Made by a program: the position numbers and the translations under genes. A DNA stretch of 64,000 nucleotides from Klebsormidium nitens (lineage: Eukaryota > Plantae > Klebsormidiophyceae), in contig DF237209.1 of NCBI GenBank assembly GCA_000708835.1, positions 1 through 64,000 of the forward strand, written 5' to 3'. How positions within the stretch are numbered: the first letter of the stretch is position 1; each line of letters begins with the position of its first letter. A model generated the notes under the pieces. It did no database searches. It was given only the letters and a program-made list of their open reading frames with translations, and was not told where the DNA came from. Shown here one piece after another: positions 11,359 through 19,577 of this stretch.

Positions 11359-14300
11359 TCAGCATATGATTTTAATGGCCATCCCCACAACCGCAGCCGA
11401 TGCCACGTGCCTAGCCATCACGCCCATTAGGGACACCCCTGAACGAGAGACTTTCTTCTCCACACCTTTTCTAAGTCTTGAATGAATGGCTGCGTCACTT
11501 TGGGATATAGTTCGGCTTGTTTCTACGGTGAAACTTTGGATAACATCAGCCCCGCTTTGCCCGGCTACACTGGGGCTGTCTCTAGAAGCAGCCGAGGAAT
11601 GGTTCCTAGAAAGTAACGAGGAGTCTAGATCCGAATGCGATGGCAGCACTTCTTGATCCGCAGGTTCTCGAGAACTACCTATCGACACCGCATTCAACCC
11701 ATCGTTGACGGAGCAATGGGCCTCGGTCCGTTCTCCCAATCTCGTCACAGGCACCCCCCGAACATTTTGCATTGCGCTTCCGACCCTCGCAAATGCGCCC
11801 ACACTCAGGAAGTCTACCGGCGCAGGCGTCTCACCCCCCCGGGGTGAACTTTCCGGCAGCTCGACCACGCTAGGGCCGGCTGCAAAAGACGCCATGAGGC
11901 CCGCGGGCTGGGGGTCCGATTCAGCGCCCATTTCAGCCCCCCGTTCCGGGAGTGCTAGATCGTACCACATCAATCTTGCCCTCTGGAAAGGAAGGGCTTC
12001 GAGTGTCAAGACGGCGGCATCGGCGACTGCGGGCCGGACTTCTCGAATCTTCGCCCCGGAGAGCGATCCCTGCAGAAACGCACGCCCAAATCAAACGAGG
12101 AAAAGATCTCGAGCTAAGTGGAAATTGCGGTTGCCGCGCTAAATCTACTAACTGCGAACCATCGGTTGTAAGGTGGTCTCGGAGGATGACGTTAAACTCG
12201 GTGCGTTTCGATGGCAGATGGCCTGGAACGGCAACTATCAGGTTTTTCATAGTAGCCTTGGAGCGCACTAAAATGTTCTTAACAGCTGACATCAGAAGGC
12301 CTGTTTGACCTTGTCATATCAAGGCGCGCAGGAAAAGAATCTGGATGACAAAGACCTCTATTCCGCTTTCGAAGAACTACAGCAGCCTGTGGTGCAGGCA
12401 CAACCCCTCGACTCTTCGAAGTTCTCAATTTCTGCCGTTCCGGGGCCTTTAGCGGGTTTTGAGGACTCGCCGGACGCCTCAATATATTAAAAAGTTCTGA
12501 CGAATCCGAACCCTGGGTGTTGAAGGATTAGGGGTTTCACGGAACGACCTGGACGGCCGCCCGCGCCCAACGCCAGAGCGCGAGCAGAGAACGGAGCCTC
12601 ACAGCGCTCGGGTGCACCGCGTTTGTCAGCAGCGCCACGAAAACGTTGCGCTCCGGGTCGATCCACAGGGACGTGCCTGCGGGGTGTGGAACGACTTTCA
12701 GATTTTTACGAGATCCCTTCTCTTTATCTGTCGCCATTGCCACGAACACTTCGGGATCCGGGTCGATTCACAGCGATGTGCCTGCGGGGTTTGGAACGAC
12801 TTTCGAGTTTTTATGCGATCTCTATTCTTATGTGGCTCCGTCTGTCGTCATGGCCACAAACACTTCGTGATCCGGGGTCGATCCACAGGGACGTGCCTGC
12901 ACGGGTGTCGCAATATATGGGCTTAGCGGTTGTCGCTATCTGAATCTGGAATAAGGGTGGTTTGCTTGGTTCTGGGTCGTTCTATCAGCAGTCCACAAAA
13001 GGGTTGCGGTCCGGGTCGATTCAACGGGACGTGCCTGCACGGGTGTCAGAGCGATGAAGACTTCAATTTACCACGGTGACCCCACCACTGCCCAACTATC
13101 TCAACATGGTTGATGTGTGGACTACAAATCATCAATCTTTTCATGGCTGGCTGAAGGAAAGCACAACATTTTTGTCTTACTGGCGCCGTCTGTCAGCAGC
13201 GCTGCAATGACGTCGTGCTCCGGATCGATTCGCAGAACGTGTCTGATCGGGTGCCGGAGAGTGTGACAGTTAGAAAATCCTCAAGTGATTTTGCGGGTCT
13301 GCCCCGACCGAAGCTTGCGATCCGCCCAGAATCACGGAACGTCACAGGGCTAGACGGGTTCGACGTGAGATAACGGCCGGTCCACGCCTCGCCTGAGTTC
13401 GACAGGTTCGGTCCGAAGCGAAGCTCACAAACTAGACGCAAGATGCATTTGCGCCATCGAAACTTTCAACATCAATATGCAGGATTTCCGGTGTGTTCGA
13501 GACAAGGCGGGAGACTTGGTGAGATTTGGCTCACCTGTAAATCCGGTATGCCCAAAGGCTCTTCGGCCCAGAAAGCTCCCCCCTGACGTGTAGTTGTCCA
13601 GGGCCCGCCGCGTCGTCGTGTCAAAGCTGCAAACAGGACGAGCACTCTCGGTCACATAACACAGTCTTGCGCATCTTGCACATCTTGAAAATGTGTGTCG
13701 ATACTGTGTTGCTTGTGTCAATGCTTCATTCCACTTCAATTGACCCGACCAGTTTAAGCGGAACGCGGCTGGAATTGCATTCCGCTTTCCAAGCCGTTTG
13801 AAATATGGCTCCTTCCTTCTTACAAATCCGAGAGAGAAGCAGATGAGGAGGAGCGACAAGGAGGCCAGAAGTAGGAGCACGGGCGCTTGCTTGACCTTAT
13901 GGTGACGATGTTTGGGCCCAGTCGCATTTCCGGGGATGCAAAATTCCCTCTTTTCAGACCCTTGGACACCATTCTAAGCCTGTCATCTACTCGCGCATGA
14001 CAAACAAACGAAAATGAACGGTTGAAAAAGTTGCAGACAGCCCTCCATACCAGTAAGTCGACAGTACGGACAAGGCAAAGCGCCTGTTTTCCAACACTTT
14101 GGCGGACATAAGGCGCCCGTCCACCTCACCCCAGTGCGAAGGGCCGCGGGCTGAGCTCCGTCGGCGGCTGCTGCCGTGTGAATAATCGCAGCGTGCTCTC
14201 CTCGAAGAAGCGCCGCCCGCTGGCCGGGTCTACGCCGCCCGCCAGCAGCATCCGGGCGTACTGCATGACGTCAGCACGGCGTCAGCGATCGACTCGGTGC

Positions 14301-17300
14301 ATGAAGTCAGCCGAGAAGCAGAGGTCTGGAGAAGGTCTAAGTTCCTGAGGAATCGAAGAACAGAGCGTATCCGGGCAAGCGTGATACGTTCAAAGTAGAA
14401 CACGCGGAATCTGTTCGGAAAAGCACTGGTGGCTTCGTTACTAAATGCTCGATTGATTTCTCCGAGGCCTGCACTGTGGAATTCCGAACGGGTATACCGC
14501 TGTCAAACCTATCTGTAGTGGCTTTCGAGAAGCCGTTTTGAGAGGCCGTGGAGCGAGGATATCTTCTTACGACCACCCATCTTTGCTGGACCACACAAGC
14601 TTCAACTCTTCCATCCGCCTAGAAACGACTTTCGAGAAGCCGTTTTGAGAGGCCGTGGAGCGAGGATATCTTCTTACGACCACCCATCTTTGCTGGACCA
14701 CACAAGCTTCAACTCTTCCCTCCGCCTAGAAACGACTTCACACTGGATTGGCGTTGGCATGAACGACCGTCAACCGAAAGTATGATGCTCCTAGCGGTAC
14801 TGAGCGAATCGTTTCCGTCAATTGATGTCAAAGGACTCACCCGAGCGATGTCTTTGGCGGTGGAAAATAGTCCCGCATGTCCAGCGACGCCGCCCAACAG
14901 GTACGCCGTAGGGTCGTGCACTGAAAGCACAGAGTTGTTTTTCAATTCACGATTCTTTAGAGTTCTGAGCCTTCCTAGAAAGCCAGTCAGATAATCGAGT
15001 TTCGTCAGCGGTTCTGTTTGTTAAACGGGTGACGCATTGTGCTTCAGTATGAGCAGACTTTTGAGTAAAGGTGGCTCAGCAACCAGCGTGGCCAACCGGC
15101 CCCTAATGAAAGACGCTGCGAGGGATTCGCTGGTGTCGTTCCTTCCAGCGACCAAATGATATTTTTCGAAGCAGTCGGGTCGCCGTCAACCTCACACCGG
15201 ACAAGTCTGCTGATAGAAGAAGTCGTCTATTGCCTTAATTGGCAACGCAAAACGCAAAACCGGTTCTTCCAGTGGTGCATACACCCCAGCTCGCTCCAAC
15301 GTTTACGTGGCGGTCAGTCTCACTGCAGCGGCGAAGCAATTTTCAAAACTCAGCGCGCTCACCTTCTCCCCAGAGCAGCCGCTTGCGGAACCCTTGGTCG
15401 ACCTCGGTTGGAATAACCCGAATGTCGAAGTCGGTTTCGCCCACTGGTCGGAAATGGGTGTCGTGCATGCCCAGCTACAGACGGGTTAACCTAGGGTTAG
15501 TAGCAGATAGTGGGGCACTCTATGCACCGCACCAATTTAGAGCGACCGGGTCAGACTTCTAGTTAAGCATCCGTTCATTTCGACTTGCGGTTTAACACCC
15601 GCCTTACTACGAATCATCGGGTGTTGAGAAAAGCAGAACAGGGCTTTGCCGCAGTGCTGAGGAAACCTTAAATGGCTCTGCTCCGCAACTGTGACCTGTT
15701 TGCACATTGTTGTACTTCGACAAGCGAGGACTTCCAAACAGATTCGGACTTTCTAGCATATACAACAACGCACGCTTGACTAGTGTGCACCTCAAAACAA
15801 ACCTCTCGCATGAAAAGCGACCAGTAAAATGGCTCCGACGACTAGGCCGCTAGAAGCGCACGGTGCTGATAACACTTCCATCTGTTCAGCGGCAGATCGC
15901 TGTGGATATGCGCATACAACCGCTGGTCCCTCACCGGTTGGTGCAGCTCCTTCTTAACGAAGGCCTCCAGCGGCTGCCCGGTGATCTCCTCGACGATCCA
16001 ACCGAGCACGATCATGGAGAGGTCGCTGTACTTGGTGGTGCCCGGGGGATACCAGCACTTGTCGGCCAGGATGAACTTCCGAATCTGCGGGGTACGTTTG
16101 AACGCTTCGATTGGCGCAACAACTTAACGGCATGCATGCTTGGCAAGAGATCGTTTTCGTGGGGTAAGTGAAGACGAGCGTCGAAGGAGAAGGGAGTGTT
16201 GTTTCGTAAAGGCAATTCTTACGAGGGTGGCATTGTACTGGTCCAATCACGACATCACCGTGGACCAGGGTTTGGAGCCGAGATATACCCTTTGACGGTT
16301 TCGATATAGAGTCAAGTCCACTCTTATCTGAACGAAGTCAGAACCCGTGTCGTTGTCTCAAAAGTGGCCAGTTAAGTGTCGCCAGTGGCTTTAGGACTTG
16401 TCATCAAGTCAGATTGACTTTCTTCGATACCGTGCTGATTGTATCAAGGCAGCAGGCCAGAGACGACAGACAGGGAGCCCACAACCCGTCCGAAAAGATT
16501 CCTGTCCGAAAAGATCCTGTCCGAAAAGCCGACGAGCCGGAGAGCAAGAGATTGATGCACAACAACATAAGGCCCGCAAGTTCCTTACTCGGGTAATCTG
16601 AGATGAAGCCCGCACAGAAGTATCTCAACAGACCCCCGAGTCCGCAGCCAAACCCACAGGTCCAAGTTCTGCGGCCAAATGAAGAAAGTTTGGAGCAGCA
16701 TCGTTCAAAGGCGAGTTCGTCCGGAGCATCATTTTTCTCGACAGCAGAGGACGACGAGCACACTACGCACCTGTTCTCGCGTCGTCAGGCCCATGTCGTA
16801 AAACGGGTAGAACTCGCGCAGGCCTGCCGTGTGCGTCAGCAGCTGACGCACAGTCACGTGGCCCTTCTTGTGCTGGCCGAAGGCGGGGAGGTAGCGCGCG
16901 GCCGGAGCGTCCAACTCTGTCAGAGAAAGCCACAGCTTTCAGAAAAGATTCGGACGTCTTCGTTTTACCAGCTGCAGTTATTGGGAGTATTTTTGGTGGT
17001 GGGAGGCCAGTTGTCAGAGTTGTTGGATCTATGATGATGCCGGGAGACGCTAAGACAAAGTTGGCCGGGCGGGCTAACAAGTAGTTCAGTCACTTACAAA
17101 TGCCGAACTGATCGATTCCTTGTAGGGGAATATTTCAGTCGGGGCGCCCAGCCTTTGAGGGAATATATCTGGTCTCGTGTTTATGGGCGAACAGAGAGAG
17201 GTGCGCCAGGCAATCTCGGGTGTTGAATTGTGCAAGAGCATGTCCCTGACGACAAAGGATCCCACTTCTGGTTCAGAATTGAGCAACCGTGGGCTAAGAG

Positions 17301-19577
17301 TTTGGAGTATGAGCAGGAGTTCCTTACCAATCAAATCACGCTCGTAGAGGATCATGATAGCGGGGACTGTCACCATAATCTGCATACGAAAGCAGGAATC
17401 GGCGAATGTCTGGGCCCACAATCTTCAGTCGTCTTAGATTCCACATGATACAGCCTCATCTTGTCAACCGTAGTTGAAATATCAAGCAAGCACCCAGAAA
17501 AGCAGCGGTTCCTGATCGAACGGGGGTTCACCTCACCTTTGTCAATGATGCAACATCCCACAGCGACTGCTCGGAGGCCTTCAGGTTCGACTCGCTGAAA
17601 AAGAAACGGCTTAAAATCAGTTGATGGCAGTACACTCAACATGTGCGCTTTGAGAGTCCTCTCTTTACAGTCCAAGGACAGCGGGGGAAGCATGACAGAA
17701 GTCAGTTCGTTTTGTCAAGACTCCTGCAGATTGTTGTTGTGATGCTTAATGTGAAACAGTTCCTATTCGTTTGCTTCTATCTCCGGAGCTTGTTGCACCT
17801 TCGAAGAGTGTGGAAGGCCACAGTCTTGAACTTGCTCGAACCAGACTGTTTCGATTTTCAAGTATCTCTTATTTGAATCACCAGATGATAAAGAAGGGGT
17901 GTATTTGGGGACTCACAATGTGTAGGTACCATAGCCTGCACGGGCAGAGGATTTCCCTAGATCAGTCACCCTTAACATACTGCTGCAAGCATTGTGGCCA
18001 CATGCAATATTCAAAGCGCCGATCTTTACAGTTTGCCTTTTCATGGTGCCTAATACTCAGGTCTTGAAATGTTTCACCTCAGAGACAGAGGAAGCACTAA
18101 GAACTTCAATTGGCGCACCCTACTCCATTATTCTCGTTGTGTGTTGATCAAGAGCAGAGAAGTTGGCAAAGCAAAAAGCTCTCAGGTATTCAGCTTGGAA
18201 CTCGCAGTCTATACAGAAACCTCTTTTTCCATAAAACTCTTTCTAAGACAATTGCAGGCTTTTGCTTGATTACGCATCTTTCATCCCCGTACAGAAGCAC
18301 GCCAAGCGACGGCAACATACAGATGTAATGGGTGATACAGGATGTTGGTCACGTTGGTAGGACGCTTTTCCAAACACAAGGCAGGAAAAGCTGCGGCAAG
18401 CATGACCAAGCATCACTGTCCGCTCCGCATACGGCCAGAGAGGGGATGGGAAGCCCCTTCTGGCCACCAAAGGAGCGGAAAGATCACACTCTTTTCACTT
18501 CTGTCAAGTTGTTTCCTTTTGTTCAATGTCATCTGACAAGCAAGTGCTCTTTCCGAAGTTGATAGGATTCTCTACTATTTGACCTGGCTTGACTGCTTCA
18601 AGGGATAAAGGCAACGCTTTCCCTTGCTAATCAAGCCCGAGTCTGAACAGATGGCCACTGCCACAACACAGCTTAGACAGGCAGAACACTTACTCCGTTG
18701 AAATATATTGCATTGGTTTGCATTCAGAATGTAAGAAGACAAGAGTGCTCCCGCACTCTGTTGATGGCCAGATGTTTTGGTTTGATCACAAGCGCATTCT
18801 TCTCTCAAACCCAGAACACAGTGCATCTAGTTTTTCTCGCGATCTAGTTTCTTAGGTTGCCAGTCCAAGGGCCAGGGCTCGCACCGTGAGAAAAGCACAT
18901 TTCTCCGCAGTCCCCATATGCAACAGCCGCTCCAGGGAACACACGCTCATTGATAGCCTGCAGCCAGACAAGAGTGTTTGACAGTGGGAAAAGCTTGGAC
19001 TCGTTGATTTACCCTTCGCTGTTGCAACTGCATTTGTCTGGTGGCCAGGATTGCCTGCTGATTGAATAGAATTTATATTCCAAGCAGCCAACAGCCGTTT
19101 GGGGGATTGTCATGTAAGTGCAGTGCTTGAATGGGATTATCTGTATCAGACAATCACTTGGAACTCAATAGTGATTCAAAGGATTATTTGAGAGTCAAGG
19201 CTTGGAAGGAGATTGGCTCCAACCAGGAAGGAAAGAGGGGAATGATGCAATCCAACCTCTGAGGCTTTGATGATCAAACATCACATGATCCTGAATGCTA
19301 GTGGTGCAAGTATCCTAGAAATCCAAGAGATTGAAGCTTTTGTGCAAGACAATCCTCTCCTTTTCCAACAATCATGCTTTGAAAGATGCTCAAGCTGGTA
19401 TTGAATGCAATTTCTAAGAGAAAAACCAGGTTGCTCAGAATCCTGCGGGACTACCAGTCAATTGTCTGAACAAGCCTTCAGCACTAGGAACTATCAAGAA
19501 GATCCTTGGGCGAGCTTCACCTTGTGCAGAATCTCTGAGATGCTTGGCACAGGGCCACCGTATTCCAGCGCCGCCAT
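11359..19577 (-). CDS. Beta-lactamase-family (class C / AmiE-PBP4B-like) serine hydrolase with a ~210-aa low-complexity C-terminal tail, 13 exons, 584 aa
   Basis: complement(join(11359..12069,12603..12676,13535..13626,14130..14260,14841..14920,15363..15474,15935..16084,16771..16916,17328..17379,17537..17594,17917..17935,18885..18957,19521..19577)); all introns GT-AG, 1755 nt, frame intact. Motifs VFPGAAVAYG, DVASLTK (SxxK), LLTHTAGL, YSD, GEVHDPTAYLLGGVAGHAGLFST, FGHTGFTG, LLTNAVHP. Confidence 0.9.
12728..13242 (-). pseudogene. Four decayed tandem copies of the serine-hydrolase exon 12603..12676 inside one intron
   Basis: Copies start at 12781, 12896, 13034 and 13242. Each keeps a CAG acceptor followed by GTSLWIDP..VFVA-like coding sequence, broken by TGG>TGA or a frameshift. 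Confidence 0.8.
14522..14739. repeat. 107-bp tandem duplication (2 copies) in a serine-hydrolase intron
   Basis: GAGAAGCCGTTTTGAGAGGCC... starts at 14527 and again at 14634. The copies differ at one position I could see (TTCCATCC vs TTCCCTCC). Confidence 0.9.
16487..16528. repeat. Short tandem repeat, ~3 x GTCCGAAAAGAT(T)CCT
   Basis: Three consecutive GTCCGAAAAG cores, intronic. Confidence 0.7.

Follow-up and report, generated by a model that had tools for sequence, protein, structure and literature searches.

In Bacillus subtilis, the secreted enzymes NagZ, AmiE and NamZ remove N-acetylglucosamine, the stem peptide and N-acetylmuramic acid (MurNAc) in turn from the ends of peptidoglycan chains (PMC8054146, PMC5061867). 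AmiE (YbbE) is an exo-N-acetylmuramoyl-L-alanine amidase of the PF00144 family, encoded in the murQ-murR-murP-amiE-nagZ-namZ operon; the gene of a second described relative, Escherichia coli PBP4B (YfeW), lies directly after murQ-murP. In RmNag3 of Rhodothermus marinus, a β-lactamase-like module accompanies the GH3 domains, and only the GH3 activity was measured, the β-lactamase-like module not being assayed (PMC6987092). Here we describe a gene of the charophyte alga Klebsormidium nitens, located in the first 64,000 nucleotides of contig DF237209.1 (the window), whose product GAQ85896.1 belongs to the same PF00144 subfamily as AmiE. As a whole, the data are best explained by an ancient bacterial acquisition that now encodes a tail-anchored AmiE-type amidase acting on muropeptides that reach the cytosol, a reading whose chances we put at about even.

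The remodelling and disposal of plastid peptidoglycan in charophytes, bryophytes and some vascular plants have barely been studied. The literature searched on plastid peptidoglycan covers synthesis genes and one hydrolase study (DipM), with nothing on this family, and it yielded no plant or algal study of these proteins; GAQ85896.1 is already public, under the automatic name 'beta-lactamase' only.

Gene structure and expression

The gene region has a guanine and cytosine content of 47–58% and no long open reading frame; when read from stop to stop, short open segments of its minus strand encode peptides of the β-lactamase family. Single exons compared with Pfam and the PDB return weak, generic matches to PF00144 or to esterases. 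Used alone as a HMMER query, exon 7 (15935–16084, minus strand) retrieves a public protein of 584 residues, GAQ85896.1 / A0A1Y1IB23, 'beta-lactamase' [Klebsormidium nitens], which comes from a 120-kb contig and is 100% identical over the exon; it served as the gene model. Walked codon by codon along the DNA, this protein gives a gene of 13 exons, 12 introns and 584 codons on the minus strand (19577–11359), with its ATG at 19577, its TGA at 11361–11359 and introns of 157–949 nucleotides, 12 of 12 with GT–AG borders. Its features, all on the minus strand, are as follows.

11359–19577, minus: whole gene, ATG to TGA, GAQ85896.1 / A0A1Y1IB23, 584 residues
19521–19577, minus: exon 1, residues 1–19
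18885–18957, minus: exon 2, residues 20–44; 3′ end matched by a loose contig end at 17936
17917–17935, minus: exon 3, a 19-nucleotide micro-exon, residues 44–50
17537–17594, minus: exon 4, residues 50–69, ending with catalytic S66-L-T-K69 (17548–17537)
17328–17379, minus: exon 5, residues 70–87
16771–16916, minus: exon 6, residues 87–135
15935–16084, minus: exon 7, residues 136–185, with Y154-S-D156 at 16030–16022
15363–15474, minus: exon 8, residues 186–223, with subfamily motifs TEVD and R215
14841–14920, minus: exon 9, residues 223–249, with VHD..GGVAGHAGLFS
14130–14260, minus: exon 10, residues 250–293
13535–13626, minus: exon 11, residues 293–324, with H319-T-G321 at 13550–13542
12603–12676, minus: exon 12, residues 324–348
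11362–12069, minus: exon 13, residues 349–584, carrying the linker and tail after the domain's last helix
11431–11940, minus: predicted disordered, non-conserved linker, residues 392–561; predicted local distance difference test (pLDDT) below 50, no Pfam domain
11365–11430, minus: C-terminal hydrophobic helix, residues 562–583, putative tail anchor; pLDDT 67–90, with equivalent tails in orthologues

The initial annotation of this DNA, made from its letters, had described a complete open reading frame of 584 residues with 12 spliceosomal introns. The number of codons and the exact intron count were recovered, but the frame is not contiguous: the coding sequence is spliced from 13 exons, the longest open stretch being the last exon with 236 codons. 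The motifs SLTK, YSD, HTG and GEVHD..GGVAGHAGLFS were all found at the places it gave, the last of them occupying residues 221–242 across the exon 8/9 junction. Its view that there is no transit or signal peptide also holds, because homology with bacterial domains already starts at residue 13 and the ATG is directly preceded by an in-frame stop, leaving no room for a presequence.

Contigs from four runs of four studies, whose library type is unrecorded, were compared over positions 12000–17999. Spliced contigs join at every modelled boundary of introns 3–12, skipping 322, 157, 411, 686, 460, 442, 580, 503, 858 and 533 nucleotides, respectively, and these skips end in CT..AC on the plus strand. 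The loose contig end at 17936 corresponds to the exon 2/3 junction, at the end of exon 2. Spliced contigs and sparse coverage of introns are expected of assemblies made from RNA, and the gene is expressed.

Two minor joints accompany the main ones. A joint from 12068 to 12548 uses a donor 54 nucleotides downstream of exon 12 and thereby includes the segment 12549–12602; it occurs in three of the four runs at about one-fifth of the depth of the main joint, and would add 18 in-frame residues between residues 348 and 349, ahead of the last helix of the domain. The other, from 16084 to 16589, occurs in two runs and uses an alternative acceptor that would add 182 nucleotides of intron 6 (16589–16770) and break the frame, probably reflecting unproductive splicing or a retained intron. 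Intron 11 holds four decayed tandem copies of exon 12 that are 74–82% identical to it (12729–12789, 12839–12900, 12978–13038 and 13187–13251, minus strand). Each keeps the AG of the acceptor and all are disabled, two by a TGA in place of a Trp codon and two by a frameshift, and the main transcript joint (12675 to 13534) bypasses all four; they look like relics of exon duplication, not alternative exons. In intron 9, a 107-bp unit with no coding relation to the gene is present twice in tandem at 99% identity (14522–14738).

A serine hydrolase of the AmiE/PBP4B branch

GAQ85896.1 matches PF00144 over residues 21–347 with 213 bits (cut-off 27; E = 8e-63) and contains no other Pfam domain. The three predicted active-site motifs of SxxK enzymes (SxxK, Yx[ND] and [KH][TS]G) are all present as S66-L-T-K69, Y154-S-D156 and H319-T-G321. 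Two alignments show no variation at S66, K69, Y154, D156, H319 and G321 and almost none at T320, and S155 is invariant or nearly so; T208, E209, R215, G221, V223, H224, D225, G233 and G236–S242 are invariant as well, including in PBP4B and the bacterial members. Overall, the catalytic and subfamily residues are conserved in 39 of the 39 eukaryotic and bacterial sequences aligned, with T320 again the nearly invariant position. The protein thus carries the complete subfamily signature TE.D, R, G[EQ]VHD and GG.[AS]GHAGLFS. Among NCBIfam models PBP4B ranks first with 141.5 bits, followed by a model at 62 bits; the class C β-lactamase model bla_class_C gives 58.6 bits, under its cut-off of 415.

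The AlphaFold2 model shows a confident domain spanning residues 5–373, which Foldseek relates to EstG, EstB, AmpC and R61 with a probability of 1.0. Family VIII esterases, EstG and a Pyrococcus PBP homologue head the PDB matches, with 19–24% identity, and no solved structure from within this AmiE/PBP4B-type subfamily was found among them. Since the nearest solved structures are esterases at this level of identity, substrate specificity cannot be read from the structure. LACTB, the mitochondrial PF00144 protein of eukaryotes, belongs to the same superfamily but matches only the N-terminal half of GAQ85896.1, and weakly (E = 5e-12); kinship with this distant fold relative was rejected, GAQ85896.1 grouping with bacteria. 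By its sequence, GAQ85896.1 is a PF00144 serine hydrolase of the SxxK type (class C β-lactamase / DD-peptidase fold) and a member of the AmiE/PBP4B branch. The annotation had placed it among such enzymes, an assignment borne out by PBP4B being the best NCBIfam model and by the nearest relatives being modules fused to GH3 N-acetylglucosaminidases.

Probable origin by transfer from bacteria

Phylogenies were calculated with FastTree from 194 domains and with IQ-TREE from 72 rows under LG+C20+F+G4, PBP4B being taken as the assumed outgroup and root; three partial eukaryotic sequences and redundant isoforms were left out of the latter. The two trees agree. In the IQ-TREE phylogeny all eukaryotic sequences form one clade (100/99), inside which two unlabelled environmental sequences, P0138 and P0152, also fall. 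This clade joins the Rhodothermota-type GH3 fusions with support of 99/96, as sister to most of them (92/85), one fusion protein lying outside (88/32). Streptophytes are monophyletic (99/92), with Mesostigma, Klebsormidium, Zygnematophyceae and land plants in species order, and prasinophyte and chlorophyte sequences branch outside them, within the eukaryotic clade. With the assumed PBP4B root, GAQ85896.1 groups with proteins linked to nagZ, namZ or murQ; the Bacillaceae proteins with AmiE synteny and the NamZ-fused proteins occupy a separate part of the tree.

This topology fits a single transfer, no later than the base of Viridiplantae, from a donor resembling Rhodothermota or Bacteroidota, followed by vertical descent and losses. 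The bacterial origin proposed for the gene is therefore upheld, in that the green clade joins Rhodothermota-type bacteria and the tree does not fit a pan-eukaryotic family. A cyanobacterial (endosymbiont) origin was considered and found to be unsupported, no named cyanobacterium being present in the best 120 proteins or in the best 80 of at least 595 bacterial loci. The family offers a clean case of one domain cut from a bacterial multi-domain enzyme, given a putative eukaryotic targeting device and vertically inherited across the sampled streptophytes.

Fusions and gene neighbourhoods of the bacterial relatives

A scan of one bacterial genome per species found at least 595 relatives, and architectures and partners were taken from the best 80 loci. 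These come from Rhodothermota, Bacteroidota, Balneolota, Ignavibacteriota, Gemmatimonadota, Acidobacteriota, Verrucomicrobiota, Planctomycetota, a few Pseudomonadota and Bacillaceae. Three architectures are seen: GH3(NagZ)–PF00144 proteins of about 970 residues, PF00144–NamZ proteins (PF07075 and PF20732) of about 800 residues, and stand-alone proteins of about 400 residues. The nearest bacterial relatives among the matches listed are mostly Rhodothermales proteins of about 970 residues that combine GH3 N- and C-domains with PF00144 and show 52–54% identity over the whole domain; the C-terminal module of one Rhodothermota GH3 fusion reaches 54% identity to GAQ85896.1.

NagZ, NamZ or MurQ is fused or located within 6 kb in 62 of the 80 best loci, as counted by tblastn. 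The raw counts are 26 fused and 16 within 6 kb for NamZ, 17 and 12 for NagZ, and 0 and 14 for MurQ; one NamZ 'fusion' (locus L040) is an overlap on the opposite strand, which corrects NamZ to about 25 fused and about 17 nearby. The remaining 18 loci have none of the three partners, and several of them are short contigs. In Peribacillus the gene order is PF00144, GH3 NagZ, NamZ, the amiE-nagZ-namZ order of B. subtilis. Repeated fusion to enzymes acting just before or after the amidase step is the main functional argument, by analogy, for GAQ85896.1.

Several loci carry further domains. An open reading frame of 1329 residues (L035:4342–8328) reads a sodium:solute symporter domain, PF00144 and NamZ in one frame, and another of 1445 residues (L079:3883–8217) has about 700 residues without an assigned domain ahead of PF00144–NamZ; both may be true transporter–enzyme fusions or start-codon artefacts of open reading frame extension. 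Two Bacillaceae AmiE-type proteins (L023:5707–7446 and L073:5773–7476) have an extra C-terminal InhA-like MAM domain (PF20773) that other members lack.

A conserved C-terminal hydrophobic tail

Beyond the catalytic domain, the AlphaFold2 model, calculated from an alignment of 39 sequences, has a pLDDT below 50 over residues 392–561 and ends in a helix (residues 562–583) that stops one residue before the C terminus. The linker varies in length and sequence among orthologues, whole proteins ranging from 494 to 914 residues. Nearly every full-length orthologue nevertheless ends in about 18 hydrophobic residues that follow an Arg, Lys or Trp, such tails being found in Sphagnum, Diphasiastrum, Marchantia, Riccia, Ginkgo, Spirogloea, Mesostigma, Cymbomonas, Chloropicon and Picocystis. 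Most orthologues have no N-terminal extension. In Cymbomonas, a LysM domain lies between the catalytic domain and the tail.

The predicted architecture, with one hydrophobic helix at the extreme C terminus and neither a signal nor a transit peptide at the N terminus, is that of tail-anchored proteins; these are inserted post-translationally and keep their N-terminal domain in the cytosol. Because of this C-terminal helix and the missing presequence, GAQ85896.1 is predicted to be a putative tail-anchored enzyme that faces the cytosol; we infer the plastid outer envelope, the endoplasmic reticulum (ER) and the mitochondrial outer membrane as candidate membranes. This conserved tail had been overlooked in the annotation, and the putative anchor argues for a cytosol-facing position, not one inside the plastid envelope.

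Distribution in the green lineage

Orthologues were sought with a word-index search using residues 1–352 as query, of which the best 120 proteins were considered, and with a second search from the land-plant sequence P0051. Orthologues with 58–64% identity were found in Spirogloea, Sphagnum, Diphasiastrum, Marchantia (Mp5g10020), Riccia, Mesostigma, Closterium, Mesotaenium and Ginkgo, and with 42–50% identity in Cymbomonas, Chloropicon and Picocystis. P0051, which is 80% identical to the Ginkgo protein, returned the same short plant list. No angiosperm, Physcomitrium or Selaginella protein was among the matches listed in the two protein searches. As judged from sequence ranking, the proteomes of these plants probably do lack the protein, because orthologues as similar as those of other land plants (55–70% identity) would have headed the lists.

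The hits lie mainly in lineages reported to have plastid peptidoglycan, namely charophytes, bryophytes, a lycophyte, Ginkgo and Chloropicon (PMC10784329, PMC12681378). Chloroplast division in Physcomitrium and Selaginella responds to ampicillin (PMC3398972). The survey proposed in the initial annotation, across lineages with and without the plastid wall, thus gives a divided answer: orthologues occur mostly in peptidoglycan-keeping lineages, but none is listed from Physcomitrium or Selaginella. Because the gene appears to be absent from these two plants, it would not be needed for peptidoglycan-dependent plastid division as such.

One record in the set is doubtful. The 'Pavlova lutheri' protein P0066 of EukProt is essentially identical to P0123 of Picocystis sp. 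ML, from which it is separated by a branch of zero length, and was rejected as a haptophyte record; probably one data set is contaminated with the other organism, so that one label is wrong.

Proposed function and alternatives

By analogy with its bacterial relatives, the function of GAQ85896.1 is most likely that of an AmiE-type MurNAc-L-alanine amidase that meets muropeptides on the cytosolic side. A bacterial gene, from a donor like the GH3 fusions of Rhodothermota and Bacteroidota, would have been acquired once, no later than the base of the green lineage. Only the amidase-like module would have been kept after the transfer, and would then have gained the disordered linker and the C-terminal hydrophobic tail in eukaryotes. 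Post-translational insertion of the tail would leave the catalytic domain on the cytosolic side of the ER or of an organelle membrane. There Ser66, activated by Lys69 and Tyr154 and with His319-Thr-Gly lining the site, would attack the lactyl-L-alanine amide of MurNAc-peptides and, through an acyl-enzyme intermediate as in B. subtilis AmiE, release the stem peptide from MurNAc. The likely substrates would be cytosol-reaching muropeptides derived from turnover of plastid peptidoglycan or from bacteria, in a reaction resembling the cytoplasmic step of bacterial wall recycling. The fusions to NagZ and NamZ and the MurQ neighbours in bacteria strengthen, by analogy, the muropeptide role that had been suggested for this gene. 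Transfers of pbp4b, NamZ, anmK and murQ into bacterivorous ciliates (PMC13198582) indicate that eukaryotes do pick up the recycling toolkit.

Several observations weigh against this proposal. The score of 141.5 bits does not reach the PBP4B equivalog cut-off of 385, and the nearest solved structures are those esterases with 19–24% identity. The eukaryotic clade and the Rhodothermota-type modules are known from sequence alone, and PBP4B is described, in work cited in PMC5061867, as a low-affinity penicillin-binding DD-carboxypeptidase and not as an amidase. Among the orthologues compared, Klebsormidium has the least hydrophobic tail (mean hydropathy 1.6), interrupted by an Arg and a His, and an enzyme facing the cytosol, if the prediction holds, would be separated from the plastid wall by the outer envelope and could not act on it directly. 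Antibiotics directed at peptidoglycan have an effect in Physcomitrium and Selaginella (PMC3398972), yet the matches listed include no orthologue from either. Finally, there are no NagZ, NamZ or MurQ genes in the 64-kb window, although clustering is not expected in a eukaryote.

If the link to peptidoglycan had been lost after the transfer, the protein could instead be a membrane-anchored esterase or amidase of family VIII type that acts at the surface of the ER or an organelle on a lipid, a secondary metabolite or a D-amino-acid-containing peptide. Substrates change frequently among PF00144 enzymes, and the nearest solved structures are the carboxylesterases EstG, EstU1, EstB and Est-Y29; the cytosol-facing tail-anchor layout is ill suited to a wall-bound substrate, and the gene is missing, among the matches listed, from Physcomitrium and Selaginella, whose division is ampicillin-responsive (PMC3398972). 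Such a role is nonetheless somewhat unlikely: the esterases are 19–24% identical, against 52–54% for NagZ-fused modules, the subfamily-specific residues common to PBP4B and AmiE-type proteins are kept in all eukaryotic members, one orthologue carries a LysM domain, and no angiosperm protein is among the matches listed. A DD-carboxypeptidase or penicillin-binding protein that trims the D-Ala-D-Ala ends of peptidoglycan precursors or fragments would agree with SxxK, YSD and HTG motifs that equally suit DD-peptidases, and with PBP4B as the best NCBIfam model, the latter being described as a DD-carboxypeptidase in the work listed as reference 19 of PMC5061867. We consider it improbable, given a score under the equivalog cut-off, a tree that places GAQ85896.1 with the NagZ/NamZ-linked group and PBP4B, the assumed outgroup, on its own long branch, fusion partners that are exo-glycosidases acting before or after the amidase step (PMC8054146), and no known D-Ala-D-Ala substrate at the predicted cytosolic face.

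The public name, the fold in common with class C enzymes and the β-lactam sensitivity of plastid division in these lineages (PMC3398972) could point to a true β-lactam hydrolase that shields plastid penicillin-binding proteins from environmental β-lactams. This is very improbable: the match to the class C model (59 bits) falls far short of the cut-off of 415, and ampicillin blocks chloroplast division in Closterium and Marchantia (PMC3398972) even though both have orthologues, which makes a protective role, and with it the β-lactam option first raised for this gene, unlikely. The high similarity to bacterial proteins (54%) might also suggest that the assembly contains contaminating bacterial DNA or that the gene is dead. 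The chance of either is next to nil, and both were ruled out: the gene lies on a 120-kb contig with twelve spliceosomal introns, spliced transcripts are seen in four studies, orthologues in more than 10 green-lineage genomes branch in species order and the catalytic residues are intact.

A muropeptide-salvage route may survive in streptophyte algae and early-diverging land plants, in which fragments of the plastid wall leave the envelope and are stripped of their peptides by this putative tail-anchored amidase, a proposal that we regard as possible though doubtful. If true, it would correspond to the cytoplasmic arm of wall recycling in bacteria, and no recycling pathway would have been described for an organelle wall before it. 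The gene is a concrete, expressed candidate with a bacterial pedigree from NagZ- and NamZ-fused modules and an orthologue in a tractable model (Marchantia), and its unexpected membrane layout predicts a reaction on the cytosolic side.

Comparison with known systems

The Bacillaceae proteins in amiE-nagZ-namZ order fall in the same family tree as GAQ85896.1 and are 36–39% identical to it. SxxK, YSD, HTG and GHAGLFS are common to GAQ85896.1 and AmiE-type proteins, the orthology of the latter to AmiE resting on Peribacillus and Neobacillus synteny. AmiE has a signal peptide, is secreted and is operon-encoded, whereas GAQ85896.1 has no signal peptide, a disordered linker and a putative C-terminal tail anchor, and is the product of an intron-rich nuclear gene. 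E. coli PBP4B is 31% identical and shares TE.D, R, G[EQ]VHD and GG.[AS]GHAGLFS, but is periplasmic, has a reported weak DD-carboxypeptidase activity and, as the assumed outgroup, lies on a long branch. Family VIII carboxylesterases and EstG (PDB 4IVI, 1CI8 and 7U1C) have the same fold (Foldseek 1.0, template-modelling score about 0.7 by target), but only 19–24% identity and neither the GEVHD nor the GHAGLFS signature.

The PF00144–NamZ fusions of Acidobacteriota, Verrucomicrobiota and Acidithiobacillus have a catalytic module 37–42% identical to that of GAQ85896.1; they differ in that the module stands in front of an exo-β-N-acetylmuramidase and in their branch of the tree. The closest relatives are the Rhodothermota and Bacteroidota GH3 fusions with the RmNag3 architecture, such as P0063 of Rhodothermus profundi, which share the clade supported at 99/96. 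These proteins of about 970 residues have a signal peptide and GH3 domains in front, whereas eukaryotes kept the C-terminal module only. In plants and algae, the family is a known kind of enzyme in a new setting and with a new architecture.

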